From the NCBI GenBank assembly GCA_964036045.1, contig OZ038379.1:48298001-48362000 (forward strand): a DNA stretch of 64,000 bases. Reading direction: 5' to 3'. The notes under the pieces were generated by a model. The model was not told where the DNA came from. It was given only the letters and a program-made list of their open reading frames with translations, and did no database searches. The translations under genes and the position numbers were made by a program. The stretch is from Eutreptiella sp. 'Long Island Sound 2002'. Lineage: Eukaryota > Protista > Euglenida. Below, one piece after another: positions 2,079-62,964 of this stretch (position 1 is the first letter of the stretch; each line of letters starts with the position of its first letter).

Positions 2079-5000
2079 GACAATATTAGCAGTGGCCCAC
2101 AATTGGGGAGCTTGGTTACATAACGCCAGCCATCTAGGGGTCCCCGACGATTCGGAAAGGGAACCAAATCAGTAGTGGCCCACACGTGAGGAGATTGGTG
2201 ACATAACCCCTACCGTCTAGGGGGTCCCCAACGCTTCAAAGCGGGGGACAAAACCAGCAGTGGCCCACAGTTGGGTGGATTGGCTACATAATCCCCGCCG
2301 TCTGTGTGGGGGGTCCCAAACACTTTAGAGCTTTAGAGCGGGGGATAATAGCAGCAGTGGCCAACAATGCGGCAAATTAGCGACACAACCCAAACTATGT
2401 GTGTGGGGGGGTCCCGAAAGCTTCATAGCGGGGAACAACATTAGCACTGGCTGCATAGTCCTTGCTATCTAAGGGGTCCCCAACGCTTGAAAGTGGGGTC
2501 AAAATCAACAGTGGCCTGCAAGTGATCAGAATGGCTACATAGTGCCTGCTTTATGTGGGTCCCGGGCGCTTTACACCGGGTACAAAATCAACAGTGGCCC
2601 GCAAATGGGCAGATGGGCTAAATAACCTCTGCCGCTTGGGGGGTCCCTTGGGCTTCAAGGTGGTGGAAAAAATCAGCAATGGCCTGCAAGTGGGTAGCTT
2701 GGCTACAAAATCACTAACGTCCCGGGTGTCCCGAAAACATCAAAGCAATCAAAGCAAAGCTTCAAGGTGGTGGTCAAAATAAATAGTGGCCAGCAAGTGG
2801 GCACCTTGTGCTGTCTAGAGGGTCCTAAAAGCTTAGAGCGGGCGACAAAATTAGTAGTGGCCCACAAGTGGGCAAAATGGCTACATAATCCCTAGCTGTC
2901 TAGCGGTACCAAAAGCTATAGAGTGTCAAAGCAAGGGATAAAATCAAGAGTGGCCAACAAGTAGGCAACCTGGATGCATAAATTGTACCGTCTAGGGGCT
3001 GCCCAAAGCTTAAGAGCAGGGGACAAAATCTGCAGTGGCTTGCAAGTGCGCGGCTTGACAGCATAACCCTTGCCGTCTTGAGGGGTCTCCAACACATTAG
3101 AGCGGGTCCAAAAGTAGCCGTGGCATTCAAAGGGGCTGATTGCGAACAAAACCCCTTTTGTCTGGTGGGTGGCGGACGCTTCGAAGCCGGTGACAAAACC
3201 CACAATGGTCCGCAAGTGGGCATTTTCGTTACATAACCCCCACCGTCCGGGGGGGCACCAATGCTTCATAGAGGGGGATAAAATCAGCCGTGGCCTGCAA
3301 GCAGGCAGATTGGCTACATAGGCCTTGGCATTGCGGGGGTTCGCAACACCTCAGAACGGGAGACGAAGTTCGCAGTGGCCCACAAGTGGGTAGACTGACT
3401 ACATAGCCCTTGCAGTTGGGGGATCTTGAACGCTTCAATGTGGGGGACATAAACAGCAGTGGCCCGGAAGTGGGCATATTGGCGACATAACCCCCGCCGT
3501 TTGAGAGTCCCCAACGCTTTAGAGCGGGGGACAAAATCAGCACTGGCTTGCAAGCGGGGAGATTGACTACATAATTTTGCCCTCTGTGGGGTTGCCAACA
3601 CCTCAGAAAGCGGGGGACAAACAACAGCACTAGCCCACAAGTGGGCAGCTTAGCTACATAACCCCTACCGTCTAAGGAGGTTTTTCAACGCTTTAGAGAC
3701 GGGGACAAAATCACCACAGGCCCACAAGTGGTCATCTGGGCTACATAACCCCTGCCGTCTGGGGGAATTGCAATGCCTCGGAGCGGGGGACTAAATCAGC
3801 AGCGGCCCTGGAGTGGGCTGCTTGGCTACATAACCCCTACCGTGAGGGGGGGGGGGGGGGGTAGCCACGCCGTCAAAGCAGGGGACAAAATCAGCAATGG
3901 CCCACGAGTGGGCACATTGGCTACATAATCCTTGTTGTCGTGGGGGTCCCCCAAGGTTCAAAGCATGGGACAAAATCAGCAGTCGCCTTTAAGTGGGCAG
4001 ATTGGTTACAAAACAGCTGCCGTTTGGGGGAACCCCAACGCCTCATAGCGAGCGCCAAAGTCAACAGTGGCTCACTGGTGGGCAGATTGGCAACACAAAC
4101 CCGACTGTTGGGGGGCGGACAAGTGGGCAGATGGGCTACATATCCCGTGTTATCTGGGGCATCGCCAACACTGCAAAGCTGGGAACAAAATTAGCAGTAG
4201 CCCTCAAGGGGTTGTTAACACTTCAGAGCGGGCGACAAAATTAGCATAGGCCCACCAGTGGGCAGCTTGGCTACATAATCCCTACCGTCAAGGGGGGTCA
4301 CCAACGCTTCAAAGCGGGGGACAAAATCAGTAGGGCCAGTAACTAAGCAACCTGGTTACATAACGCCGACCAATTTGGGGGGTCACAAAAGCCGACAAAA
4401 GGGCAAACGGGTTGCATGACCCCCACCGTCTAGGGGGTCCCTAACCCTTCAATGTGGGGGACAAAATCAGCAGTGGCCGACAAGTGGGCAACTTTGCTAC
4501 ATAATCCTTGCTATCTGGGGGTACGCCAATGCTTCAAAGCGGGGGATTGAATTAGCGCCGGTCTGCAAGTGGGCAGCTTGGCTACATAACCCCTACTGTT
4601 CTAGGGGGGTCAACGCTTCACAGCGGCGAACAAAAACAACAGTAGCCAACTAGTGGGCGGATTAGCTGGATAACGCCTATCAGCTGGCGGGTCACCAAAG
4701 CTTTAGAGCGCGTGGACAAAATGAGCAGTGGCTTGCAATGGAGCATAATGGTTGGAAAACCCCTACCGTCTTGGGGGTCCCAATACTTCATCGCAGTGGA
4801 CAAAATCAGCAGTGGTGCGTAACTAGGCAGCGTGGTTGCATGGCACCTAACTTTTGGAGGAGTCGCCAACACTTCAGAGCGGGGCGAAAAACTCAACAGT
4901 GGCCTGCAAATGGGCACACTGGTTACTGAACTCCTATCGTGTGGGGGGTCCCCAAAGCTTCGGAGCGGGGGACAAAATCAGCAGTGGCTCACAAGTGGGC

Positions 5001-5840
5001 AGCTTGGCTACATAAACCTTGCCTTGTGTGTGGTCGCAAACGCTGTAAAGCGGGTACAAAATCAGCATTGGACTAGGAGTGGGCAGCTTGGCTACATAAC
5101 CCCTATCGTCTAGGGGGTTCCCAACACTTCAAAGCGAGGGGACAGAATCAGCAGTGGCCTACAAGTGAGCCGACTGGGGACAGGACCTCTACCGCCTGGG
5201 GGGGTCCCCAACGCTTCAAGGAGGTCAAGAAAAATTAGCAGTGGCCCACAATTGGGCAGCTTGGCTACATAATCCGTGCCGTCTAGGGGGGGGGGCGGCC
5301 AACGCTTCAAAGCTGTACACAAAATCAGCACCGGCCCGCAATCGGGTAGATCGCCGAATAATCCCTGGCGTCTAGGAGGCTGGCCAACACCTCACAAAGG
5401 GGGACAAAATTAGCACTGGCCCACAAGATGGCACATTGCCTACACAGCCCCAACTATGCCAAGCTATGCCAAAGCAGAGTGGGGGACAAAATCCGCGGTG
5501 GCCCACAAGTGGGCAACTTTGCTACACAACCCCCGGCGTCTTGGGGGTCCCCAATGCTTCATTGCAAGGGACAGAATCAGTAGTGGCCCGGGAGTGGGCA
5601 GCTTGGCTACATAATCCTTGCCCTCTTTGGGGGGGTCCCAACACTTAAGAGCGGGGGAACAAAATGAGCAGTGGCCTGCGGGTGGGAAGACTAGTGACAG
5701 AACGTCTACCGCCTGGGGGGTCCCCAACGCTTCAAGGAGCTTGAGAAAAATTGGTAGCATCCCACCATTGGGCAGCTTGGCTATATAATCCTTGTTGTCT
5801 GGGGGGGGGGGGGGGGTTGGCCAATGCGTCAAACCGGCCG
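2079..5840 (+). repeat. ~85-bp tandem satellite array
   Basis: Approximate consensus gtgggcagcttggctacataacccctgccgtctagggggtccccaacgcttcagagcgggggacaaaatcagcagtggcccacaa. Spacing of the gtgggc core is 84-86 bp (4995, 5079, 5165). Confidence 0.95.
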
Positions 5841-6642
5841 TAGAGACCGACGTTAAAACCAAAATGGTTATTTTCAATTTTTAATATATTAAAGGGGGTA
5901 AAAGTGAACCTGCCAAATGTTAACACGTTAACCCAATTTTGGGTCGTTTGCACCGCTGTGCCTGTGCGCGTACCGTGCCCACTTGAAGTGTTTAGGTGGT
6001 CAAAGGGTGCCCCATGGGATGCTACAAGGGTTGCATAGTCCTATAGGTGGTTATGTAGCCCCACACATCCCTCTCCGGTCCCCCCCTTCACCTCACTCCC
6101 AACCTCCTTTTTCCCTTGTGTAGCACCTGTTATGCCTTGCTCTCGGGACACCCCTCTCGAGCTTAGTACGACGCTCACGCGTTTGAGTGGGGCCAAGAGT
6201 TTGCGGGACCCTTTGGCCCCCCAACTCCTTGGTGCGTGGGTGGCCTCATCCGCTTTGGCCAAGGCCCCGTGGTACGAGGCCAGCAAGGTTGCCCAACTTC
6301 CGCTCATCCGCAACAAGCCAATAGAGGCCGTGAAGCATTATGCCTCCGTCCTCTTCCCGGCGCCCTAAATGATCGGGTTACTTATGGACTTGAACGTCCC
6401 CAAGGGCGGCTTCCGGCATGTGTCGGAGTTCATGACCCGCTAGGGGGCCGCTTACACCGCCGCGACGGGCCTCCCATTCCCCCACCCCATCCCTTCATGT
6501 GACCGCTTCACGGACAGATGGAAGGAGTTGGTGAAGTAGGTTGCGCTAGATTGACCCGTGTCGCCGCCAAAAGGGTCAACTTTGGTTTACACATTCATTT
6601 TTGACCAAATATCAAAAATGTAGGTTCTAACATAGGTCTCTA
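5841..6642. mobile_element. 802-bp TIR element carrying a transposase-family exon fragment
   Basis: Left tagagaccgacgttaaaacc versus right (reverse complement) tagagacctatgttagaacc. It interrupts one satellite unit between ...tcaaaccgg and gggacacaaaacc. Termini can be read as TAGAGACC with no TSD, or GAGACC with a TA TSD. Confidence 0.75.
6124..6560 (+). pseudogene. Decayed exon homologous to the N-terminal part of the 51.6-kb transposase
   Basis: Reading through stops gives ELSTTLTRLSGAKSLRD...MIGLLMDLNVPKGGFRHVSEFMTR*GAAYTAATGLPFPHPIPSCDRFTDRWKEL. This aligns with ELNMMLVRLSGATALLD...LIGLLLELGAPRSGFRVLCEYITRQGDAYTARTGLPFPWPIATLDQFDATWRSL at 51.6-52.0 kb. It is preceded by a pyrimidine tract and AG at 6122-6123. 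Confidence 0.8.
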
Positions 6643-7890
6643 GGGGGGACACAAAACCAGCACTGGCCCGCAATTGGACAAATTGCTGAATAATCCTTGG
6701 CGTCTAGGGGGCTGGCCAACACCTCGCAAGGAGGGACAAAATCAGCACTGGCCCACAAAATGGCAGATTGCCTACATAACCCTTGCTATGCGGGGGGTCC
6801 CCACAGCAAAGTGGGGGACAAAATGAGCAGTGGTCCACAAATGGGTAGCTTTGCTACACAATTCCTGCTGGCCTGGGGGTCCCCAACGCTTCACAGCGGA
6901 GGGGGAAAATCAGCAGTGCCTCACAAGATGGCAGATTGCCTACATAACCCCGACCGTCTAGGGGGTTCCCAAAGCAGGGTGGGAGACAAAATTAGTAGTG
7001 GCTCACAAGTGGGCAGCTTTCCTACATAACCTCTACCGCCTAGGGGGTCCCCAACACTTGAAAGCGGGGAACAAGGTCAGTAGTGGCCTGCCAACGGGCA
7101 ACTTGGCTACATAATTGATGCCCTTTTGGGGGGGGGTCTTCAACACTTCAGAGCGGGGGGACAAAATCAGCAGTGGCCTACAAGTGGGCTGACTGGGGAC
7201 AGAACCTCTACCCCCTGGGGGGGTCCCCAACGCTTCAATGAGGTTAAGAAAAATTAGCAGTGGCCCACAATTGGGCAGCTTGGCTACATAATCCGTGCCG
7301 TCTAGGGGGGGGGGGGGTCCCAACGCTTCAAAGCGGCGGACGAAATCAGCAATGGCTTGCAAGTTGGCAGATTGGCTACATAACCCTTGCTGCCCGGTGG
7401 GTCTCCAAAGCTTGGGAGCAGGGGACAAAATCAGTACTGGCCCACAAGTGGGCAGCTTTGCTACATAATCCGTGCCGTCTAGGGGGATCGCCAGCGCTTC
7501 AAAGTGGGGGACAAAATCAGTAGTGGCCTACAAGTGGGAAGCTTGGCTACATAGACCCTGCTGCCCGGGGGGTCCCCAACGCTTCAGAGCGCGGGGACAA
7601 AATCAGCAGTGGCCAGCAAGTGGGCATGTTGGCTACATAACCCCTGCCATTTGGGGGGTCTTCAGAGCACAGGGACAAAATCAGCAGTGGCCCACAAGTG
7701 GGCAGCTTGGCTACATGGCCCCTACCGTTGGGGGGTCCCCGACACTTCAGAGAGGGGGACAAAATCAGCGTTGGGGGGTCCCCAACACTTCAGAGAGGGG
7801 GACAAAATCAGCAGTGGCCTGCAAGTGGGCAGCTTGGCTACATCATCCCAACTGTTTGGGGGGTCTCCAATGCTGCAGAGCAGGGACAGC
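6643..7890 (+). repeat. ~85-bp tandem satellite array, continuation
   Basis: Same consensus as 2079-5840, resuming immediately after the inserted element. Confidence 0.95.
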
Positions 7891-10273: not shown

Positions 10274-12303
10274 TGAAACCATGTCTGGATGCCCAACGGT
10301 GATATGTAACATGATGGACAAGGTGTAGGATGTCACCGCAGCCCCCGAAGCCATGCCTCCATGCCTAGCGGTGATATGTAACATGATGATAACACCGCAA
10401 TCCCTGTAACCATGTCTCCTTGAGCAGCACGGGTATGTAACATGATGTACAAGGTGTAGGACATCACTACACCCCCTGAAACGATGTCTCCATGGGCATC
10501 AGAGATGTGTAAAATGATGTACAAGGTGTAGGATATCGCCACAACCACTGAAACCACATCTCCATGCCCAACGGTGATATGTAACATGATGTACAAGGTG
10601 TAGGGTATCACCACGGCCCCTAAAACCATGTCTCCATGCCGAGCGGTCATATGTAACATGATGTACAACGCATGGGATATCACCGCAACCCCTGACACGG
10701 TGCCTCCATGCCCAGCGGTGATATGTAATAGGATGTACAAGGTGTAAGATATCACCGCAAACCCTGAAACGATGCCTCCATGCGAAGCGGTGATATGTAA
10801 CATGATGTAAAAGGCATGGGATATCACTGTAGCCCTTGAAACCATGCCTCCATGCCTAGCGGTGATATGTAACATGACAATATCACCGGAGCCCATGAAA
10901 CCATGTCTGCATGCCGAGCAGTGATATGTAACATGATGCACAAGGTGTGGGATATCGCCACAACCCCTGAAACCATGTCTCCATGGGCAGCAACGATGGG
11001 TAACATGATGTACAAGGTGTAGGATATTACCGTAGCCGCTGAAAACATGCCCCTATGCCCGCCGGTGATATGCAACATGATGTATAAGGTGTGGGAAGTC
11101 GCCACAGCCCTAAAAACCATGTCACCATGGGCGGCAGGGGTAGGTAACATGATGCACAAGGTGTAGGATATTACCGTAGCCGCTGAAAACATGCCCCCGT
11201 GCCTGGCGGTGATACACAACATGATGGACAAGGGATATTACCGTAGCCCCTGAACGCAGGCCTCCATATAGAGCGGTGATATGTAACAAGATGTGCAAAG
11301 GGTATGATATCACTGCAGCCCTTGAAGCCATGCCGAGCGGTGATATGTACATGATGATATCACCACAGCCCTTGAAACCATGTCTCCATGCCCGGCGTGG
11401 ATATGTAACATGATGGACAAGGTGTAGGATATTACGACAGCTGCTCAAACCATAGTTCCATGCCCAACGGTGATATGTAACATGATGTACAAGGTGTAGG
11501 ACATTACCACAACCCCTCAAACAATGCCACCATGCCCGAAGCTGATATGCAAGATGATGTACTAGGTGCAGGATATCACTGCAACCCCTGAAACCATACC
11601 TCCATGCCCAACGGTGATATGTAACATGATGTACAAGGCATGGGATATCACCGCAGCCCTTAAAACCATGTCTCCATGGGCGGTAGTGATATGTCACATG
11701 ATGTACACGGTGCAGGATGTCAGTGCAGCCCTTGAAACGATGTCTCCATGCCCAACAGTGATATGTAACATGATGTACAAGGCATGGGATATCACAACAA
11801 CGCCTGAAATCATGTCTCCGTGCCCAGCAAAGATACGTAACAAGATGTGCAAGGTGTAGGATATTACCGAAGCCGCTGAAACCATGCCCCCATGCCGAGC
11901 GGTGATATGTAACATGATGTACCAGGTGTAGGATATCACCACGGCCCCTAAAAGCATGCCTCCTTGCCGAATGGTGATATATAACATGATGTATAAGGTG
12001 TAGGACATCACCGCAACCCTTGAAACCATGCCTCCATGCCCATGAGTGATATGTAACATGATGCACAAGGTGTAGGATCCCAGTGCAGCCCCTGAAACCA
12101 TGCATTCATGGGCAACAGTGATATGTAACATGGTGTACAAGGTGTAGGATATTACGGCGGCCCCTGAAAGCATGCCTCCATACCTAGCAGTGATACGCAA
12201 TATGATGTCCAAGGCATGGGATATTAATGGAGCCCCTGATACCATGTCTCCATGCCCTCCGGTGATACGTAACATGATGTACAAGGTGTAGGATATCACC
12301 GCA
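10274..12303. repeat. 72-bp tandem minisatellite
   Basis: Consensus gcggtgatatgtaacatgatgtacaaggtgtaggatatcaccgcagcccctgaaaccatgtctccatgccca (72 nt). The minus-strand ORFs show a matching 24-aa periodicity. Confidence 0.95.
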
Positions 12304-13500
12304 GAGGAGGTTGGGGGTCATGAGGGAGGGGCCAAGCTTGAGCGACCAATTGGCGTCCAATGCACTTGGTTGTATGTGGGTTGTCCCTTGGCCTGTGCTC
12401 CCCCAGTGCAAGCTGAAGCCCAGCGGCACAGTGTGATGTATGGCACGTGTAGCGACACAGGTCGGTTTTTTGCTGGCGGCAGTCACACAGGACGGCCAAG
12501 TTCCATGCCGTTTCCAGGATCTGGCAAACTGCTTGGACAATGTGAGTGGAGGAGGAGTCGGGGTAGTGAGTGGCAATCATGATATTATCCCGAAATTGGC
12601 AGAGTGCAACAACGCCGTGGGCATTACGCCAGAATGGAAACCCTTCGGGGGACATACACAACTCGCCCAGGGCATATAAGAGGCGGCGGGAGGTGAAGAC
12701 TGACCAAAGGCTATGGAGGTCCGATGCCTGTGTTGAAAACGAGCGCTCCATGGGTATGCATCCCTGTCTGCACCACAGCTATCCTGTTGCATGGACAAAA
12801 ATGTTATGCTCCATTTCAAATTCGATGGTGTCCATCATTTGTGCATGGGTAATGAACCAAAATTTTGTAGAGTTTGCTCTGCCCGCCCCGTCCAATTTGT
12901 CCGAGTCCCTGCTAACAAACAAGATGACTTCACTCATCCGCCAATGTTTTCTCTTCGACGGCCACTCACTGGCCGTTGTTGAATTCATCTTTATAATCTA
13001 TTTCCCTCAAGAACACGCAACCTACTAAATGCAGCCAATGGTACCATTTTGAAACCTCATAACCTCATGACCACATACACACGTGCTGCCTTTGGGCAGC
13101 TCTGTTGGCGGATTCTGTCCAGGGCTTCCCAGTCGTCGTTCCATACCACTTCATATACCCGAAGGTCCGCACAGCCTAGTGGTGTCCGGGACGTGTATTT
13201 GTGCCCTTCCAAATAAGCCCATTTGCGCAGCCAATCTTGTAAACCTTAATTGCGAGACACTTTCTAGTTGGTAATAAATATGAGGCTGCGTGCACTGCTT
13301 TGATTGTTGCCTGAAGGAAGTGCGGTTCCCCTGCAAAGGCTCTGCGCAGCGCCCGAGGCATCGCCCTCATGCTGCCCGCCCGTCCGTAGCCAGACAGGAG
13401 CACTGTCTGCAGCCAAGCGAGCGCGCTGAGGATTTGCCCCACCCACGTTCCGACCCACGGCCTCCCGTTCGCAAGCGCCCCCGTAAAAATTCCGCTCAAA
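12304..13500 (-). mobile_element. Penelope-like retroelement reverse transcriptase remnant, copy 1
   Basis: RT-like motifs occur in order across stops and frameshifts: SYLLPTRK; FLREIDYKDEFNN (motif A-like); EHNIFVHATG*LWCRQGCIPMERSFSTQASDLHSLW (motif B-like); LCQFRDNIMIAT (YxDD-like, 12584-12598); then LGPSLMTP. Confidence 0.7.
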
Positions 13501-16859: not shown

Positions 16860-16930
16860 CCCCCCACCGGGGGTTGAACCCATGACCTTACAGTTGCAGA
16901 GGCAGTGCTTTACCCACTAGGGTATGGGCC
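16860..16930 (-). other. tRNA-derived sequence (tRNA pseudogene or SINE head)
   Basis: Minus strand reads GGCCCATACCCTAGTGGGTAAAGCACTGCCTCTGCAACTGTAAGGTCATGGGTTCAACCCCCGGTGGGGG, with A-box-like TAGTGGGTAAAGC and B-box-like GGTTCAACCCC at tRNA spacing. The anticodon stem is degenerate. Confidence 0.5.
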
Positions 16931-17172
16931 ATCTCTGACATACCATTGCACAGGGGTGGTATTGATATTGGGTCCAAACCCGGGGGGGCGACTACAACCG
17001 GTCCTGATGCGACCCACCCCCCAGCTATCTGTCAAAACTCGGGAGGGGGGGGGGGGGGGGGGGCAGAGTTGGGGGGGGTCCGGCCAGGGGTCGGGGGGGT
17101 GGTCAAGCCGGGGGTCGGGGGGGGGTCTGGCCAGGGGTCAGGGGGGCGTCGGATGGGGTGAGGGGGGGGGGG

Positions 17173-17202
17173 TTAGGGTTAGGGTTAGGGTTAAGGTTAG
17201 GG
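17173..17202 (+). repeat. Interstitial telomeric (TTAGGG)n tract 1
   Basis: ttagggttagggttagggttaaggttaggg. Confidence 0.95.
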
Positions 17203-18352
17203 TCACCGAGCTGGTGGAACCAGTCTTGGTTTTATAACCCTTTTTAGTGTCTAGGGTGGACCTACCAGGTTTAGCAGCAGCAGCAGCAAGCAGCAGCAAG
17301 CAGCAGCAGCAAGCAGCAAGCAAGCAGCAGCACGCGCGAAATGGGGAAAAATCAGATTTCCGTCGTGGTGCTTCAGATTCGGGTGAAATTTTGGTGGATG
17401 ATACCTATGGGTGTGAAGTACAATCACACAAAGTTTGAGCAAGAAACTCAACGGTGGCGGCCGGGAACGGGATTCGCAAGTGGCGGACCTCAGTTTCAGA
17501 AACTGCAGTTTAGGGCCAAAAACAGCCATTTTAGGGCCAAAAATGCCCTGGAACACATTCAAAACGGCCGAACCAAGGGAAACGGTGGGTACACTCCACG
17601 TGCGGCTTGACTTCCCCGTGTCAACGAGCTCTTTGCGGCCCTCTAACTCCATGATATGCCGCGGAAGCGGCCCAAAAAGGCCCCCAGAAGCTCCAACTGC
17701 CGACAGCCACAAACCAAGAACAGGCCATATCTTTGGCTACATGGCTCAAAATGCGATTCCGAGGGCACCTACTCCACCCGCAACCCCCCACGTTTTGTGG
17801 TTTCCACCCCTCAGAATTGCCCAAACGGACGCCTAGACCCCAATAACTAGGCCCACTAGGCTGTGGCAAGCTGCAAGCTCAAGCCCAAACAGGTGGGTAC
17901 CCAAATGGGTCAACAGGGTCCGAAAGGGGTAAAAATATGACGTTCCGCAAAAATGATCCTAGACCATGTGCGACGCTAAAACAAGTGTTTTTGGACTGTT
18001 TTGAGCTTGTGGTGGCCCATTTGGGTCCTCCAAAAATCCCAAAATGCCTTGAAAATGGGCTGTTTTGGGACCAAAAATGGGTCAAAAATGGGTCAAAAAC
18101 ACATTTTCCAAAACTCATCGTAGACCATTTGGGGTGCACAAAAGGGTGAAATGAGCCCATTTTGAGCCCATTTTGGGGCATTTTGGCCCCTGAGAAGTCC
18201 AAAAAGCCTTGAAAGTGGGCCTCGTGGTGATGGGGTTCAGGTAGATTTCACTTTGTCAAGAGCCATCAATGTGTGAATCATTCTTGATGTCCCTCACCAT
18301 TCATATCTAATGTTCCCTCCCCCACCAGCTCGGTCCCAATATTCAGTCTTGA
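17203..18352 (+). mobile_element. ~1.14-kb element with asymmetric TIRs, copy 1 (Helitron2/Helentron-like, non-autonomous)
   Basis: accgagctggtgg at 17205-17217 and its reverse complement ccaccagctcggt at 18322-18334, 18 nt before the 3' end. Internal (AGC/AGCA)n microsatellite; TTAGGG on both flanks. Confidence 0.7.
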
Positions 18353-18430
18353 TTAGCCCTAGGGTTAGGGTTAGCCCTAGGGTTAGGGTTAGGGTTAGGG
18401 TTAGGGTTAGGGTTAGGGGTAGGGCCAGGG
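18353..18430 (+). repeat. Interstitial telomeric tract 2, with TTAGCCC and other variants
   Basis: ttagccctagggttagggttagccctagggttagggttaggg... Confidence 0.95.
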
Positions 18431-19565
18431 TCACCGAGCTGGTGGAACCAGTCTTGGTTTTATAACCCTTTTTAGTGTCTAGGGTGGACCTACCAGGTTT
18501 AGCAGCAAGCAGCAGCAAGCAGCAAGCAAGCAGCAGCACGCGCGAAATGGGGAAAAATCACAACTCCGTCGTGGTGCTTTGGATTTGGTTGAAATTTTGG
18601 TGGATGATACCTATGGGTGTGAAGTACAATCACACAAAGTTTGAGCAAGAAACTCAACGGTGGCGGCCGGGAACGGGATTCGCAAGTGGCGGACCTCAGT
18701 TTTAAAAACTGCAGTTTAGGGCCAAAAACAGCCATTTTTGGGCCAAAAAAGCCCTGGAGCACATTCAAAACGGCCGAACCAAGGGAAACGGTGGGTACAC
18801 TCCACGTGCGGCTTGACTTCCGTGTGTCAACGAGCTCTTTGCGGCCCTCTAACTCCATGATATGTCCCGGAAACGGCCCAAAAAGGCCCCCAGAAGCTCC
18901 AAATGCCGACAGCCACAAACCAAGAACAGGCCATATCTTTGGCTACATGGCTCAAAATGCAATTCCGAGGGCACCTACTCCACCTGCAACCCCCCACGTT
19001 TTGTGGTTTCCACCCCTCAGAATTGCCCAAACAGACACCTAGACCCCAATACCTAGGCCCACTAGGCTGCGGCAAGCTGCAAGCTCAAGCCCAAACAGGT
19101 GGGTGCCCAAATGGGTCAACAAGGTCCGGTAGGGGCAAAAAGATGACTTTTCTCAAAAATGATCCTACACCATGTGCGACGCTAAAACAAGTGTTTTTGG
19201 ACTGTTTTGAGCTTGTGGTGGCCCAGTTTGGTCCTCTGAAAATCCCAAAATGCCTTGAAAATGGGCTGTTTTGGGATCAAAAATGGGTCAAAAATGGGTC
19301 AAAAACGCATTTTTCCAAACCTCATCCTAGACCATTTGGGGTGCACCAAAGGGTGAAATGAGCCCAGTTTGAGCCCATTTTGGGGCATTTTGGCCCCTCA
19401 GAAGTCCAAAAAGCCTTGAAAGTGGGCCTTGTGGTGATGGGGTTCACGTGCAAGCTGATTTCACTTTGTCAAGAGCCATCAATGTGTGAATCATTCTTGA
19501 TGTCCCTCAGCAGTCATAGCTGATGTTCCCTCCCCCACCAGCTCGGTCCCAATATTCAGTCTTGA
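18431..19565 (+). mobile_element. ~1.14-kb asymmetric-TIR element, copy 2
   Basis: TIRs at 18433-18445 and 19535-19547; collinear with copy 1. Confidence 0.7.
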
Positions 19566-19577
19566 TTAGGGTTAGGG

Positions 19578-20721
19578 TTACCGAGCTGGTGGAACCAGTC
19601 TTGGTTTTATAACCCTTTTTAGTGTCTAGGGTGGACCTACTAGGTTTAGCAGCAGCAGCAGCAGCAGCAAGCAAGCAGCAGCAGCAAGCAAGCAAGCAGC
19701 ACGCGCGAAATGGGTAAAAATCAGAATTCTGTCGTGGTGCTTCAAATTCGGCTGAAATTTTGGTGGATGATACCTATGGGTGTGAAGTAAAATCACACAA
19801 AGTTTGAGCCAGAAACTCAACAGTGGCGGCCGGGAACGGGATTCCCAAGTCGCGGACCTCAATTTCAAAAACTGCAGTTTAGGGCCAAAAATAGCCAATT
19901 TTGGACTAAAAAAGCCCTGGAACACATTCAAAACGGCCAAACGAAGGGAAACGGTGGGTACACTCCACGTGCGGCTTGACTTCCCCGTGTCAACGAGCTC
20001 TTTGCGGCCCTCTAACTCCATGATATGTCCCCGAAACGGCCCAAAAAGGCCCCAGAAGCTCCAAATGCCGACAGCCACAAACCAAGAACAGGCCATATCT
20101 TTGGCTACATGGCTCAAAATGCAATTCCGAGGGCACCTACTCCACCAACAACCCCCCACTTTTTGTGGTTTCCACCCCTTAGAATTACCCAAACGGACGC
20201 CTAGACCCCAATACCTAGGCCCACTAGGCTGCGGCAAGCTGCAAGCTCAAGCCCAAACAGGTGGGTACCCAAATGGGTCAACAAGGTCCAGTAGGGGCAA
20301 AAAGATGACTTTTCTAAAAAATGGTCCTAGACCATGTGCAACGCTAAAACAAGTGTTTTTGGACCGTTTTGAGCTTGTGGCGGCCCAGTTTGGTCCTCCG
20401 AAAATCCCAAAATGCCTTGACAGTGGGCTGTGACCAAAAATGGGTCAAAAATGGCTCAAAAACGCATTTTTCCAAACCTCATCCTAGACCATTTGGGGTG
20501 CACAAACGGGTGAAATGAGCCCATTTTGAGCCCATTTTGGGGCATTTTGGCCCCTTAGAAGTCCAAAAAGCCTTCAAAGTGGGCCTTGTGGTGATGGGGT
20601 TCACTTGCAGGCTGATTTCACTTTGTCAAGAGCCATCAAGTGTAAATCATTCTTGATGTCCCTCACTAGTCATAGCTGATGTTCCCTCCCCCACCAGCTC
20701 GGTCCCAATATTCAGTCTTGA
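19578..20721 (+). mobile_element. ~1.14-kb asymmetric-TIR element, copy 3
   Basis: TIRs at 19580-19592 and 20691-20703; separated from copy 2 by ttagggttaggg. Confidence 0.7.
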
Positions 20722-20770
20722 TTAGGGTTAGGGTTAGGGCCAGGGTTAGGGTTAGGGTTAGGGCTAGGGT
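20722..20770 (+). repeat. Interstitial telomeric tract 4
   Basis: ttagggttagggttagggccagggttagggttagggttagggctaggg. Confidence 0.95.
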
Positions 20771-20789
20771 TGCTGTTAGGGCCTGCAGC

Positions 20790-21400
20790 CCTCTTGTAGC
20801 CCAAATATGAATTCTCTACAAAATTTTGAGCATTTTGAGTATAAACACATGGTATGAAAAAAAAAATTGGCGCCTTTGGCGCCGGACAGTTTTCTCTAGG
20901 GACACTTGCTGGTGGCCGACCCGGCACCACTATCTTTCAAAACCCGGGGGGGGGGGGGGGGGGCTGGGGGGGGTCGCATACAAGGACCGGGCCCGGCCGC
21001 CCCCCCGGGGGTCCAAATTGGTTTTCATCCATCATTGGGTTCTCCTGAAAAAACTGAGTATTTTGAGCATAGAAGCAAATTTGCCTAAGGGCGCCTTTGG
21101 CGCCAATGGTCCGGCACTTCGGTGCCAATTTCCAGGGTGGGGGGGGGGGGGGAGTCGGCGTAAAGGACCCGCCCCCCCCCCCCCCGGGATCAGCGCGTCG
21201 AGGGGGTTCAGAAAAGTCATCATTTGCCATATATTTGATGAAAAAAAAATGGACCAATTTTAATGCTCAAAAAATTTTCGGTGCCTTCGGCGCCAGACTT
21301 CATAATGACTGATTAATGGTGCCTGTCAATTGAGCCCTTTTCCCAAACCCCCCCCCCCCAGTTTTCGGGGGCTCTATTGACCCCCCCCCCCCCCAGAAAT
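20790..21400. repeat. Dispersed repeat with ggcgcc(tt/cttc)ggcgcc mini-hairpins and G/C runs
   Basis: The 21195-21385 block (gcgtcgagggggttcagaaaagtcatcatttgc...ggcgccagacttcata...gggggctctattgaccc) recurs at ~26258-26445. Related ggcgcc-hairpin pieces occur at ~32.3, 40.0 and 47.8 kb. Confidence 0.75.
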
Positions 21401-56464: not shown

Positions 56465-57060
56465 CCATAGGTCGCCATAGGCCCTAATAGTTCCCCGTAG
56501 GTGCCAATGGGTCCCCGAAGGGCCCCATAGGTCCCCATAGGTCCCCATGGGACCCCATAGGTCCCCATAGGCCCCCATAGGTCCCCACAAGCCCGCGTAG
56601 GTCCCCATAGGTCCCCGTAGGTCCCCATAGGCCCCCATAGGCCACCATAAATCCCCATAGGCCCCCATAGGCCCCAATAGGTCCCCATAGGTCGCCATCG
56701 ATGCCAATCAGTCCCCATGGGGGACGTATTGGGGCCTATGGGGACCTATGCGGGCCTATGGGGACCTATGGGGGCCCATGGCAACCTATGGAGACCTATG
56801 GGCACCTTTGGGGACCTACGGGGGCTTGTGGGGGCCTATGGGGGCTTGTGGGGCCAACGGTGCCCATAGGTCCCCAAAGGTCCCCATAGGTCCCCAAAGG
56901 TGCCCATAGGTGCCCATAGGGCCCCATAGGTGCCCATAGGTCCCTAAAGGTCCCCAAAGGTGCCCATAGGTCCCCATAGGTCCCCAAAAGGTGCCCATAG
57001 ATCCCCATAGGTCCCCATAGGCCCCCATGGGTCCCCAGAGGCCCCCAAAGGTGCACCAAG
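56465..57060. repeat. 10-bp satellite (gtccccatag)n with an inverted central block
   Basis: Forward at ~56465-56700, reverse (ctatggggac)n at ~56715-56860, forward again at ~56865-57060. Confidence 0.9.
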
Positions 57061-60000
57061 GTGTAGACCCCCAAAATAATTGGCGCGACCCCATGCGCCA
57101 ATTCCTCTGGGGGTCTAGACCCCCAAAATAGTTGGCGCGACCCTATGGGCCAATACCTAGGGGAGTCTAGACCCCCAAAATAATTGGCGCGACCCTATGC
57201 ACCTATTCCTATGGGGGTCTAGACCGCCAAAATCATTGGCGCGACGCTATGCACCAATACCTATGCGGGTCTAGACCCCCAAAATTTTTGGTGTGACCCT
57301 ATACACCAATTCGTATGGGGGTCTAGACACCCAAAATAATTGGCGCGACCCTATGCCCAGATTCGTATGGGGGTCTAGACCCCCAAAATAATTGGCGCGA
57401 CCCTATGCGCCAATACGTAGGGGGGTCTAGACCCCAAAAGAATTGGCGCGACCCTATACACCAATTCCCATGGGGGTCTAGACCCCCAAAATAATTGGCA
57501 CGACGCTATACACTGATTCCTATGGGGGTCTAGACCCCCAAAATAATTGGCGCGACCCTGTGCGCCAATTCTTATGGGGGTCTAGACCCCCAAAATAATT
57601 GGCGCGACCCTACGCGCCAGTTCCTATGGGGGTCTAGACGCCCAAAATAATTGGCGCGACCCTACGCGCCAATTCGTATGGGGGTCTTGACCCCCAAAAT
57701 AATTGGCACGACGCTATGTGCCAATTCCTATGGGGGTCTAAACCCCCAAAATAATTGGCACGACCCTGTGCGCCAATTCCTATGGGGATCTAGACCCCCA
57801 AAATAATTGGCGCGACCCTATGCGCCAATTCCTATGGGGGTCTTGACCCCCAAAATAATTGGCACGACGCTATGTGCCAATTCCTATGGGGGTCTAGACC
57901 CCAAAAATAATTGGCAGGACCCTATGCGCCTATTCCTATGGGGGTCTAGACCCCCAAAATAATTGGCGCGACCCTACGCGCCAATTCCTATGGGGGTCTA
58001 GACCCCCAAAAGAATTGGCGCGACCCTGCGCGCCAATTACTATGGGGGTCTAGACCCCCAAAATAATTGGCGTGCCCCTATGCTCCAATTCCTATGGGGG
58101 TCTAGACCCCCAAAATAATTGGCGCGACCCTACGCGCCAATTCCTATGGGGGTGTAGACCCGCAAAAGAATTGGCGCGACCCTACGCGCCAATTACTATG
58201 GGGGTCTAGACCCCCAAAATAATTGGCGTGCCCCTATGCGCCAATTCCTATGGGGGTCTCGACCCCCAAAATATGTGGCGCGACCCTATGCGCCAATTCC
58301 TAGGGGGGTCTAGGGGCCCAGAATAATTGTCGCGATGCTATGCGCCAATACCTATGCGGGTCTGGACCCCCAAAATAATTGGTGCGACCCTACACACCAA
58401 TTCCTATGGGGGTCTAGACCCCCAAAATAATTGGCGCGACCCTATGCCCCGGTTCGTATGGGCGTCTAGACCCCAAAAATAATTGGCGCGACCCTATGCG
58501 CCAATACCTAGGGGGGTCTAGACCCCAAAATAATTGGCGCGACCCTATACACCGATTCCCATGGGGGTCTAGACCCGCAAAATAATTGGCGCGACCCTAT
58601 ACACCGATTCCCATGGGGGTCTAGACCCGCAAAATAATTGGCACGACGCTATACACTGATTCCTATGGGGGTCTAGACCCCCAAAATAATTGGCGCGACC
58701 TTGTGCGCCAATTCTTATGGGGGTCTAGACCCCCAAAATAATTGGCACGACCCTACGCGCCAATTCCTATGGGGGTCTAGACGCCCAAAAAGATTGGCGC
58801 GACCCTACGCGCCAATTCGTATGGGGGTCTTGACCCCCAAAATAATAGGCACGACGCTATGTGCCAATTCCTATGGGGGTCTAGACGCCCAAAAAAATTG
58901 GCACGACCCTATGCGCCAATTCCTATGGGGGTCTAGACCCCCAAAATAATTGGCACGACCCTGTGCGCCAATTCCTATGGGGGTCTAGACGCCCAAAAAA
59001 ATTGGCACGACCCTATGCGCCAATTCCTATGGGGGTCTAGACCCCCAAAATAATTGGCACGACCCTGTGCGCAATTTCCTATGGGGGTCTAGACCCCCAA
59101 AAAAATTGATGCGCCCCTATGCGCCAATTCCTATGGGGGTCTAGACCCCCAAAATAATTGGCGCGACCCTACGCGCCAATTCCTATGGGGGTCTAAACCC
59201 ACAAAATAATTGGCGCGACCTTATGCACCGATTCCTATGGGCGTCTAGACCCCGAGAATAATTGGCGCGACCATATGCGCCAATGCGTAGGGGGGTCTAG
59301 ACCCCAAAATACTTGGCGCGACCCTATACACCAATTCCCATGGGGGTCTAGACCCCCAAAAAAATTGGCACGACGCTATACACTGATTCCTATGGGGGTC
59401 TAGACCCCCAAAATGATTGACCGCGACCCTGTGCGCCAATTCTTATGGGGGTCTAGACCCCCAAAAAAATTGATGCGCCCCTATGCGCCAATTCCTATGG
59501 GGGTCTAGACCCCCAAAAGAATTGGCGCGACCCTACGCGCCAATTCCTATGGGGGTCTAGACCCCCAAAAGAATTGGCGCGACCCTACGCGCCAATTACT
59601 ATGGGGGTCTAGACCCCCAGAATAATTGGCGCGCCCCTATGCGCCCGTTCCTATGGGGGTCTCGACCCCCAAAAAATGTGGCGCGACCCTATGCGCCAAT
59701 TCCTAGGGGGGTCTAGGGCCCCAAAATAATTGAGGCGACCCTACGCGCCAATTCCTAGGGGGGTCTAGACCCCCAAAATAATTCGCGCAACCCTATGCGC
59801 CAATTCCTAGGGGGGTCTAAACCCCAAAAATAATTGGCGCGAGCCTGTGCACCAGCTCCTATGGGGATCTAGACCCCCAAAAGAATTGGCGCGAACCTAC
59901 GCGCCAATTCCTATGGGGGTCTAGACCGCCAAAATAATTGGCGCGCCCCTATGCGCCAATTCCTATGGGGGTCTGGACCCCCAAAAAAATTGGTGCGACC

Positions 60001-62964
60001 CTCTACACCAATTCCTATGCAGGTCTAGACCCCCAAAATGATTGGCACGACCCTATGCAATGATTCCTATGGGGGTCTAGACCCCCAAAATAATTGGCGC
60101 GATCGTATACACCAATTCCTATGGGGGTCTAGACCCCCAAAATAATTGGTGCAACCCCATACACAAATTCCTATGGGGGTCTAGACCCCCAAAATAATTG
60201 GGACGACCCTATGCACAGATTCCTATGGGGGTCTAGACCCCCAAAATAATTGGTGCAACCCTATACACCAATTCCTATGGGGGTCTAGACCCCCAAAATA
60301 ATTGGCACGCCCCTATACACTGATTCCTATGGGGGTCTAGACCCCCAAAATAATTGGCGCGACCCTGTGCGCCCATACGTAGGGGGATCTAGACCCCAAA
60401 AAAATTGGCGTGACCCTATGCGCCAATTCCTAGGGGGGTCTAGACCCCCAAAAAAAATGGCGTGACCCTGTGCACCAATTTCTATGGGGATCTAGACCCC
60501 CAAAAGAATTGGCGCGACCCTCTGCGCCAATTCCCATGGGGGTCTAGACCGCCAAAATAATTGACGCGCCCCTATGCGCCAATTCCTATGGGGGTCTAGA
60601 CCCCCAAAATAATTGGTGCGAGCCTATGCGCCAATTCCTACGGGGGTCTAGACCCCCAAAATGATTGGCACGACCCTATGCAATGATTCCTATGGGGGTC
60701 TAGACCCCCAAAATAATTGGCGCGACCCTATACACCAATTCCTATGGGGGTCTAGACCCCCTAAATAATTGGTGCAACCCTATGCGCCCATACGTAGGGG
60801 GGTCTAGACCCCAAAATAATTTGCGTGACCCTATACACCAATTCCTATGGGGGTCTAGACCCCCAAGATAATTGGCGCGACCCTATGCAACGATTCCCAT
60901 GGGGGTCTAGACCACCAAAATAATTGGCGCGACCCTACGCACCGATTCTTATGGGGGTCTAGACCCCAAAAATAATTGGCGTGACCCCACACGCCAATAC
61001 CTAGGGGGGTCTAGACCCCCAAAATAATTGGCGCGACCCTATACACCAATTCCTATGGGGGTCTAGACCCCCAAAATAATTGGTGCAACCCTATGCGCCC
61101 ATACGTAGGGGGGTCTAGACCCCAAAATAATTTGCGTGACCCTATACACCAATTCCTATGGGGGTCTAGACCGCCAAAATAATTGACGCGCCCCTATGCG
61201 CCAATTCCTATGGGGGTCTAGACCCCCAAAAAAATTGGTGCGACCCTATGCGCCAATTCCTATGGGGGTCTAGACCCCCAAAATAATTGGCGCGACCCTA
61301 TACACAAATTCCTATGGGGTCTAGACCCCCAAAATAATTGGCACCACCCTATGCACCGATTCCTTTGGGGGTCTAGACCCCCAAAAAAATTCGCGCGACC
61401 CTATGCGCCCATACGTAGGGGGGTCTAGACCCCAAAATAATTGGCGTGACCCTATACGCCAATTCCTATGGGGGTCTAGACCCCCAAAATAATTGGCACG
61501 ACCCTATGCAATGATTCCTATGGGGGTCTGGACCCCCAAATTAATTGCCACGACCCTATGCGCCAACTCCTATGGGGGTCTAGACCCCCAAAATAATTGG
61601 TGCGACCCTATGCGCCAATTCCTGTGGGGGTCTAGACCCCAAAATAATTGGCACGACCCTATGCGCCAATTCCTATGGGGGTCTAGACCCCCAAAATAAT
61701 TGGCGCGACCCCAAGCGCCAATACCTAGGGGGGTCTAGACCCCGAAAATAAGTGGCGCGACCCCAGGCGCCAATACTTGGGGGAGTTCAGACCGCCAAAA
61801 TAGTTGGCACGACCCTATGCGCCAATTCCTATGGGGGTCTAGACCCCAAAATAATTGGCACAACCCTATGCGCCAGTTCCTATGGGGGTCTAGACCCCCA
61901 AAATAATTGGCACGACCCTATGCCCCAATTCCCATGGGGGTCTAGACCCCCAAAATAATTGGCGCGACCCCAAGCGCCAATACCTAGGGGGGTCTAGACC
62001 CCCAAAATAATTGGCGCGACCCTATGCAACGATTCCCATGGGGGTCTAGACCCCCAAAATAATTGGCGCGACCCTATGCACCGATTCTTATGGGGGTCTA
62101 GACCCCCAAAATAATTGGCGTGACCCCACACGCCAATACCTAGGGGGGTCTAGACCCCCAAAATAATTGGCGCGACCCTATACACCAATTCCTATGGGAG
62201 TCTAGACCCCCAAAATGATTGGCGCGACCCTATGCGCCTCTTCCTATGGGGGTCTAGACCCCCAAAATAATTGGCACGACCCTATGCGCCTATTCCTATG
62301 GGGGTCTAGACCCCCAAAAGAATTGGTGCGACCCTATGCGCCAATTCCTATGGGGGTCTAGACCCCCAAAATAATTGGCGCGACCCTATGCGCCTCTTCC
62401 TATGAAGGTCTAGACCCCCAAAATAATTGGCACGACCCTTTGCGTCAATTCCCATGGGGGTCTAGACCCCCAAAATAATTGGCGCGACCCTATGCGCCCA
62501 TTCCTATGGGGGTCTAGATCCCCAAAATAATTGGCGCGACGCTGTGCACCAATTCCTTTGGGGGTCTAGACCCCCAAAATAATTGGCGCGACCCTCTGCG
62601 CCAATTCCTATGGGGGTCTAGACCGCCAAAATAATTGACGCGCCCCTATGCGCCAATTCCTATGGGGGTCTACACCCCCAAAATAATTGGTGCGACCCTA
62701 TGCGCCAATTCCTATGGGGGTCTAGACCCCCAAAAAAATTTGGCACGACCCTATGCAATGATTCCTATGGGGGTCTAGACCCCCAAAATAATTGGCGCAA
62801 CCCTATACACCAATTCCTATGGGGGTCTAGACCCCCAAAATAATTGGTGCAACCCTATGCGCCCATACGTAGGGGGGTCTAGACCCCAAAATAATTTGCG
62901 TGACCCTATACACCAATTCCTATGGGGGTCTAGACCGCCAAAATAATTGACGCGCCCCTATGCG
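57061..62964. repeat. 52-bp tandem satellite, about 113 copies
   Basis: Consensus tatgggggtctagacccccaaaataattggcgcgaccctatgcgccaattcc. Confidence 0.98.

Follow-up and report, generated by a model that had tools for sequence, protein, structure and literature searches.

Three co-linear units of 1149, 1134 and 1143 nt lie amid TTAGGG-type repeats in a 64-kb stretch of the genome of the euglenid Eutreptiella sp. 'Long Island Sound 2002' (C2:48298001-48362000 of a 2.28-Gb assembly; henceforth, the window), and most probably arose as separate insertions of a single Helitron2-type element, non-coding and non-autonomous, that homes to TTAGGG. The verdict reached here is that of a rare DNA transposon homing to telomere repeats, which represents a target-specific variant of the Helitron2-type non-autonomous elements. 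New in this work are the filled and empty copies of the repeat that hosts the trio, the fraction of the genome's telomere-like tracts that adjoin a unit, the complete lack of direct junctions between units, and a sister family residing in (AT)n along with its enzyme-bearing element.

The three units, with pairwise identities of 95.5, 93.9 and 94.9%, are built on a common plan. The motif [C/T]ACCGAGCTGGTGG begins at the first base of each unit (17204, 18432 and 19579; positions are counted from the first letter of the window), and CCACCAGCTCGGT, the exact reverse complement of ACCGAGCTGGTGG, is found near the other end (at 18322, 19535 and 20691). At the 5' end this 13-nt inverted repeat is offset by 1-2 nt, and its 3' copy stops 18 nt short of the terminus in all three units, each of which is closed by a terminal CAGTCTTGA (ending at 18352, 19565 and 20721). 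An (AGC/AGCA)n tract is located about 70 nt inside each unit, and the spacers of 79 and 13 nt between the units consist of TTAGGG-type repeats on the same strand as each other. The first-pass annotation of this DNA had described three collinear units with these ends, the inverted copy, the microsatellite and the telomere-repeat spacers, and each of these was recovered where it had been placed. All runs of (TTAGGG)2 or longer within the window fall in the trio region; therefore, the association of units and tracts is not a matter of chance. In a comparison of 46 units of the family, the 13-nt inverted repeat is kept throughout, and conservation is highest over the first 50 nt and over the last ~32 nt. 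The 5' terminus forms a 26-nt hairpin (z-score -2.7) holding an invariant ..TAACCCT.. motif that is complementary to the TTAGGG target. No significant Pfam family was detected in the open reading frames (ORFs) of the window unit, and no poly(A) tail was found on it.

The tracts around the trio are carried by a dispersed repeat, named host repeat B, which consists of a left arm rich in G, a degenerate telomere-like tract marked by the variants TTAAGG, TTAGCCCTAGGG, CCAGGG and CTAGGG, and a 246-bp right arm. The features of the region, from left to right, are as follows.

17040-17172, plus strand: G-rich left arm of host repeat B; elsewhere the arm, ..GGCC.GGGGTCAGGGGGGCGTCGGATGGGGTGAGGGGG.., stands ahead of the tract in copies of both kinds, empty and filled.
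17173-17203, plus strand: left part of the host tract, (TTAGGG)3 TTAAGG TTAGGG T; TTAAGG recurs in other B copies.
17204-18352, plus strand: unit 1, 1149 nt, with the 5' inverted repeat at 17205-17217 and (AGC/AGCA)n at 17273-17332.
18322-18334, plus strand: 3' inverted repeat of unit 1, followed by the 18-nt tail ending in CAGTCTTGA.
18353-18431, plus strand: spacer 1, a 79-nt (6n+1) stretch of host tract in which TTAGCCCTAGGG variants occur twice.
18432-19565, plus strand: unit 2, 1134 nt, with inverted repeats at 18433-18445 and 19535-19547 and the microsatellite at 18501-18538.
18433-18458, plus strand: 5' hairpin of unit 2 (z-score -2.7).
19566-19578, plus strand: spacer 2, TTAGGGTTAGGGT, 13 nt; length 6n+1.
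19579-20721, plus strand: unit 3, 1143 nt, with T rather than C as its first base and inverted repeats at 19580-19592 and 20691-20703.
19648-19701, plus strand: microsatellite of unit 3.
20722-20766, plus strand: right part of the host tract; its CCAGGG and CTAGGG variants follow the order seen in L044, L048 and L054.
20767-21010, plus strand: right arm of host repeat B, starting with GGGTTGCTGTTAGGGCCTGCAGCC; repeat copies match it at 95-98%.

Evidence for insertion is obtained by comparing filled with empty copies of host repeat B. The start of the right arm occurs 426 times in exact form genome-wide, and 20 right arms were sampled by position, not by similarity; 14 of these 20 copies hold a unit, at varied positions of the tract, and 5-6 are empty (~70% occupied), the empty ones keeping left arm, tract and right arm without a unit. 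For instance, the empty copies L092 and L093 and the filled copy L015 have an idiosyncratic tract in common, the sole difference being the unit plus one T. Similarly, once each window unit is excised together with one T, what remains is an unbroken tract in register, which runs co-linear to that of the empty copies L092, L104 and L123; the insertion site of unit 1 is empty in L092, L093 and L123, and the two TTAGCCCTAGGG variants of spacer 1 are present in the empty copies L091, L092, L104 and L123. Because the restored tract matches the empty B copies, the telomere-like repeats belong to the host, and insertion takes place without a scar at GGG(T)^(T)TAGGG. Each unit adds one extra T relative to the empty sites and may be read either as GGG^[TC...TTGA]^TTAGGG or as GGGT^[C...TTGAT]^TAGGG; this single T at the junction is assignable to neither side, and there is no duplication beyond it. 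The earlier statement that the junctions need no target-site duplication is upheld with this one refinement, in that neither a TTA nor any other duplication is seen between empty and filled B copies. As a separate observation on the host copies examined (L087-L106), B right arms occur in an inverted arrangement in L087.

The association extends over the whole genome. An exhaustive pattern count in the assembly returned at least 8,406 copies of the window family with exact 5' ends, distributed on all large contigs. The tabulation of flanks that the first-pass annotation had called for shows most copies to be flanked by TTAGGG, with G-T ahead of the first base in 7,996 of the 8,406 5' ends (95%) and the exact TAGGGT in 6,325 (75%). 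The opposite polarity, that is, CCCTAACCCTAA within 12 nt upstream, is seen in none of the 8,406; therefore, the polarity of the family relative to the telomere repeat is absolute. The 5' junctions with a base other than G at -3 are mostly tract variants, internal deletions or 5' fragments, with a few informative nested insertions. Conversely, exact (TTAGGG)3 starts without a preceding G number only 1,036 genome-wide, and 593 of them adjoin the 3' end of a unit. The tract starts without a unit in front that were sampled belong to other tract-bearing host repeats, and no second multi-copy element flanked by telomere repeats was evident among them. Two more multi-copy sequences were seen to stop right at a TTAGGG tract, namely ..CGCCACACTTGG/TTAGGG.. 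(L112/L114) and ..CCACCATCGG/TTAGG.. (L119/L120; the slash marks the junction), which may represent either more hosts of such tracts or more elements associated with telomeres. The first-pass annotation had called for a test of enrichment at chromosome ends; copies and tracts are dispersed over contig C1 from 0.59 to 200 Mb, with no clustering at contig ends. The family also includes a 1.6-kb subfamily of ~110 copies, in which unit positions 1004-1098 are swapped for a 583-bp non-coding insert (C1:3131174-3132549 with L056, L085 and L076; C17:32355416-32358776 with L054 and L086); this insert has no similarity to the Rep/helicase element described below.

Long telomere tracts are not required for insertion. 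Two whole units sit in another unit at an internal TTTTTAGGGTCTAGGG site (L062/L077 and L064/L078), which offers just one or two hexamers and beyond which the host unit resumes, and a non-telomeric insertion with exact family ends, ..TGTT^..^TAGG.., is present at L008. Units with exactly identical ends are found in at least four unrelated flank contexts. The nested insertions and L008 argue against a spread by homologous recombination, and together with the empty and filled host repeats they support the earlier suggestion of a DNA element that targets TTAGGG.

The tandem arrangement arises from stacking: the arrays are separate insertions placed one beside the other, not concatemers. Spacers between units measure 6n+1 nt in 35 of the 38 junctions sampled, the shortest being TTAGGGT (7 nt), and at least one hexamer is retained in all 38; moreover, a search of the genome with an exact-end pattern found no case in which a 3' end is followed by the next 5' end at 0-5 nt. 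Since direct 3'-5' junctions do not occur, the arrays are not rolling-circle concatemers, and the tandem arrays, which the first-pass annotation had likened to those of Helitron2/Helentron derivatives, are now explained as stacked insertions. In a neighbour test on 46 full units from 30 loci, the closest relative was located within the same array for only 4 of the 31 units of multi-unit loci. For unit 2, a copy with unrelated outer flanks at C24:1123834-1124965 matches at 99.2% identity, whereas the nearest sampled relative of unit 1, on another contig, reaches 97.3% and that of unit 3 only 94.8%. These values suggest three insertions of different ages, of which unit 2 would be the youngest and unit 3 the oldest. 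A one-off segmental duplication, which the first-pass annotation had named as a refuting outcome, does not agree with a family of this copy number or with a 99% identical copy of unit 2 in unrelated outer flanks.

The rolling-circle affiliation of the family is now supported by homology and not by shape alone, because its core matches non-coding modules of a Rep/helicase element that also resides in this genome, where 863 candidate Helitron Rep domains were counted. This 12-kb element, at C13:10433271-10445240 on the minus strand (L108+L109; read within C13:10430000-10449999), contains an ORF of 2,631 aa with Helitron_like_N (PF14214) and PIF1 helicase (PF05970) domains and, in its C-terminal part, a SAP domain and a borderline J (DnaJ-like) domain (27.5 bits vs. 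a cut-off of 27.8); no endonuclease family was detected in this ORF at E <= 0.01. Unit positions ~205-1003 are 75-78% identical to the ~1-kb non-coding modules that flank the ORF, one copy lying ahead of it and one behind. A 15-bp asymmetric inverted repeat borders the element, set 3-4 nt in at the 5' end and ~12 nt in at the 3' end; a microsatellite is found just within the 5' end, and (AT)n lies on both sides. Where the 5' module, a unique segment and the ORF meet, the sequence is 95-98% conserved across at least 11 loci. Its ends are also those of a second family of passengers of ~1.2 kb (family 2), with about 9,000 first-look candidates, which were located in (AT)n at all of the five independent loci inspected. 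The C13 element itself stands amid about nine such ~1.2-kb passengers of alternating orientation, with (AT)n between each pair. The window unit is therefore a sister of this pair of Rep/helicase element and passenger, having the 75-78% core, the layout, the simple-repeat setting and the clustering in common with it; it differs in that family 2 has wholly different terminal repeats (CTACACCCCTCTCCC vs. ACCGAGCTGGTGG), is flanked by (AT)n in both orientations, and has a known enzyme-bearing copy.

Another Helitron family, with an ORF of 1,924 aa, was considered as a partner and rejected, being a canonical Helitron with a GC-rich 3' hairpin (GCCCGCGC..GCGCGGGC, positions 960-1010 of L107, C2:71502300-71507900) and ..CTAG/TC.. 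ends, which abut head to tail where copies lie in tandem at intervals of 13.8-14.7 kb. In this canonical family, a 145-bp piece recurs downstream of the ORF with a period of ~840 bp.

In terms of classification, the window family is supported as Helitron2-like rather than Helentron by its asymmetric terminal inverted repeats, its T^(T/C)-compatible target, and the lack of an endonuclease in the related enzyme. Helitron2 elements are marked by terminal inverted repeats that are asymmetric and by insertion at T^(T/C) with no duplication (PMC13085455, PMC5148889). Similar to FoHeli of Fusarium (PMC5148889), the window family possesses asymmetric repeats (the 5' one terminal, the 3' one subterminal), a 5' hairpin, and a duplication-free junction that is compatible with T^(T/C) if read as GGGT^TAGGG, though it may also be read as GGG^TTAGGG; a Rep (HUH) plus PIF1-like helicase without endonuclease is encoded by the 2,631-aa ORF of the sister element. 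Unlike Helitron2, the family has a hexamer phase and not a dinucleotide as its target, its 3' hairpin is not significant, and the related enzyme carries SAP and J-like tails. Termini in common with a Rep/helicase element were not found in tests of low sensitivity, the core alone being common (75-78%). The C-terminal apurinic-type endonuclease of Helentrons is missing from the related 2,631-aa ORF. As a result, the Helitron2/Helentron affiliation proposed by the first-pass annotation is retained for Helitron2 and dropped for Helentron.

Helentron-derived HINE/DINE-1 elements, with their 12-15-bp subterminal inverted repeats, TT target and microsatellites (PMC4067079), offer a further comparison (Thomas et al. 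2014). The 5' side of the window unit fits, as the 13-bp subterminal repeat is 1-2 nt from the 5' end and a small inverted repeat is nested in it; the microsatellite, the junction T, and the very high copy number of a non-coding derivative are likewise in common. However, the 3' repeat of HINE lies 38-60 bp from the end and is followed by a palindrome (PMC4067079), whereas that of the window unit is located 18 nt from the end, with no clear palindrome or significant stem-loop after it, and no endonuclease is present in the related transposase. A canonical Helitron (5'-TC...CTRR-3', A^T target) was rejected, since the unit ends in ..TCTTGA and its site is GGG(T)^(T)TAGGG. A miniature inverted-repeat transposable element of PIF/Harbinger type, for which the first-pass annotation had named a TTA duplication and symmetric inverted repeats as the signs, was also rejected: no TTA/TAA duplication exists, and the inverted repeats are asymmetric.

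As to the mode of movement, integration proceeds without duplication, in one polarity and at a fixed hexamer position, GGG(T)^(T)TAGGG, the top strand of the element running co-linear to the G-rich one; the site entered in the window was an interstitial telomere-like tract on the older, dispersed host repeat B. As each insertion leaves TTAGGG on both sides, the tract remains a target, and head-to-tail stacking with 6n+1 spacers follows. A Rep (HUH nuclease)/PIF1-helicase transposase would act in trans, with the 12-kb C13 element or a sibling of it as the candidate source. According to Helitron biochemistry in the published papers, such a transposase would make a nick at the 5' end, unwind the top strand, link the two ends of this strand, and insert it into a single-stranded G-strand. 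The uniform orientation of the window family is accounted for by the polarised TTAGGG target, and both orientations of family 2 by the self-complementary (AT)n. It may further be speculated, by analogy with the guide sequences of IS200/IS605, that the insertion site is read by the terminal DNA of the element itself and not by protein alone. Though rather unlikely at present, this idea is motivated by two features: the sister families combine a 75-78% core and one architecture with different termini or tails and different simple-repeat targets, and the ..TAACCCT.. of the 5' hairpin is complementary to the target of the window family.

Several observations weigh against the favoured reading of separate Helitron2-type insertions. 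The empty sites are paralogous repeat copies rather than alleles, and the 3' terminus lacks a significant hairpin (z-score -1.1). The Rep/helicase relative, a putative source of mobilisation for the window family, has quite different terminal repeats and sits in (AT)n. No enzyme-bearing copy with the family's own inverted repeats, the autonomous copy that the first-pass annotation had proposed to look for, was recovered by filters so insensitive that the result is weak either way: three strict filters, which kept the terminal repeat and forbade family sequence further in, returned only singletons, and they demand 10 simultaneous mismatches, such that only ~6% of unrelated sequences pass. A laxer filter beyond core position 1003 returned only the 1.6-kb insert variant and an unrelated repeat with a chance 14-mer anchor. 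The 30 loci of the neighbour test were picked by likeness to unit 2, which biases that test. Moreover, neighbours are 98-99% identical in some arrays (L012, L016 and L026), and at C3:97.17-97.19 Mb the composite of unit and host arm is repeated in tandem with a period of ~1.56 kb; on account of both, local duplication also adds to the copy number. The start of the B right arm appears in this array no fewer than 15 times at intervals of ~1,560 bp (C3:97170631-97192907), which suggests that the composite has turned into a satellite-like array.

The last of these points leads to the proposition that the units have no mobility of their own, and that only local tandem duplication or unequal crossing-over, with amplification of the composite of B plus unit, has been at work. 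The ~1.56-kb period and the near-identical neighbours are in its favour, as is the finding that 10 of the 12 best-matching right arms hold a unit with the same tract variants; nevertheless, the window units differ from one another by 4.5-6% while unit 2 has its 99% match in another flank context, exact ends recur in at least four unrelated contexts, the same host repeat exists empty and filled, and the units occupy varied tract positions and enter one another. As the sole cause, this proposition is largely refuted and is considered very improbable. Recombination may be invoked in a different manner, in which the unit travels with telomere repeats and spreads by homologous exchange (e.g., through an excised circle) with no transposase, in line with the amplifying unit akin to yeast Y' that the first-pass annotation had offered. 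Such an amplicon would likewise yield one polarity, no duplication, 6n+1 spacers and tandem arrays, and would suit both the majority of the genome's interstitial (TTAGGG)3 tracts that adjoin a unit and the identical tract variants that recur beside units. Those variants, however, are those of host repeat B and are found in empty copies too; whole units with exact ends occur at the internal site of one or two hexamers and at the non-telomeric ..TT^TAGG.. of L008; the termini are the most conserved parts, within the asymmetric-repeat plan of a Rep/helicase element that has a homologous core; and the copies run along the contigs, not massed at their ends. The Y'-like alternative is thereby left improbable.

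Concatemers formed by 3' read-through or by replication of a circular intermediate have a precedent in this genome in the directly joined head-to-tail copies (..CTAG/TC..) of the canonical Helitron family. For the window family, the lack of any 0-5-nt gap in the exact-end search, the hexamer retained at every sampled junction, and neighbours that are usually not closest relatives render this explanation almost certainly wrong. Finally, the family may be mobile and target-specific by means of another enzyme, such as a PIF/Harbinger-type transposase or a site-specific recombinase (tyrosine or serine) that has a circle as its substrate, its likeness to Helitron2 being coincidental. Scarless, oriented and sequence-specific integration is a typical product of site-specific recombinases, and the failure of the weak filters to turn up any Rep/helicase copy bearing the termini of the family itself points the same way; on the other hand, the core is homologous to conserved modules of a Rep/helicase element of the same architecture (terminal repeat, microsatellite, 1-kb core, subterminal repeat and short tail), and neither a duplication (TTA or other) nor a symmetric inverted repeat is present. 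Only a small probability is given to a different enzyme, and separate insertion of a Helitron2-type element is retained as the favoured reading.

Other elements associated with telomere repeats differ from the window family in kind. TRAS and SART are poly(A) non-LTR (long terminal repeat) retrotransposons that encode a reverse transcriptase and an endonuclease; they resemble the window family in their oriented, sequence-specific insertion in telomeric repeats, but the window unit has no poly(A), coding capacity or significant Pfam family in its ORFs and is kin to a DNA-transposon module, for which reason this class was rejected. The Y' elements of yeast are subtelomeric, encode a helicase, and spread by recombination; they also form tandem units with telomere repeats between them, whereas the window family is interstitial, non-coding, and capable of insertion at single hexamers. 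A Y'-like amplicon was rejected as a class on the insertions at one or two hexamers, the one non-telomeric site, and the interstitial distribution.

A closer likeness is provided by the telomere-capping Helitrons of Paramecium aurelia, which are associated with C4A2 repeats at germline chromosome ends (BMC Biol 2026, PMC13085455) and which render out of date the earlier statement that known telomere-specific elements are all retrotransposons. These are Helitron-like elements and ORF-less derivatives with telomeric flanks on both sides and an absolute orientation bias; they are rich in internal satellites and have been read as strand-specific insertions in telomere repeats (PMC13085455). The window family exhibits the same one-polarity telomere flanks on both sides and the same fixed orientation. 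In contrast to the Paramecium elements, which are confined to germline chromosome ends with a C-rich (C4A2) top strand (PMC13085455), it resides in short interstitial tracts on other repeats, with a G-rich TTAGGG top strand and asymmetric inverted repeats. The Paramecium elements of 2026, at true chromosome ends and on the opposite strand, are the only published parallel found in the literature searched, and for euglenids, or for TTAGGG tracts, this search returned no account of elements of this kind.

Elsewhere in the window, a tRNA-like sequence is present on the minus strand at 16860-16930 (..GGTTGAACCCATGACC..), beside long G runs, and may be a tRNA-derived short interspersed element. Tandem arrays occupy 57060-62964 (52-bp unit x114), 10388-12304 (72-bp unit x~27) and 2088-7812 (several blocks of 85-bp units), and long G and C homopolymer runs are common throughout.

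The choice of target by Helitron-like elements is poorly understood, and sequence-specific DNA transposons are rare. In the window family, ~8,400 insertions share a single phase of a 6-nt repeat, with absolute polarity, visible empty sites, and no scar; together with a sister family that has another target and an intact-looking Rep/helicase gene, this family makes target choice testable. If the site is indeed read by the terminal DNA of the element, Helitron-type integration would be reprogrammable through a few terminal bases. Moreover, the family accounts for most of the interstitial telomere-repeat tracts of this assembly, and it therefore matters wherever such tracts are read as relics of chromosome fusion or used to judge the ends of an assembly.

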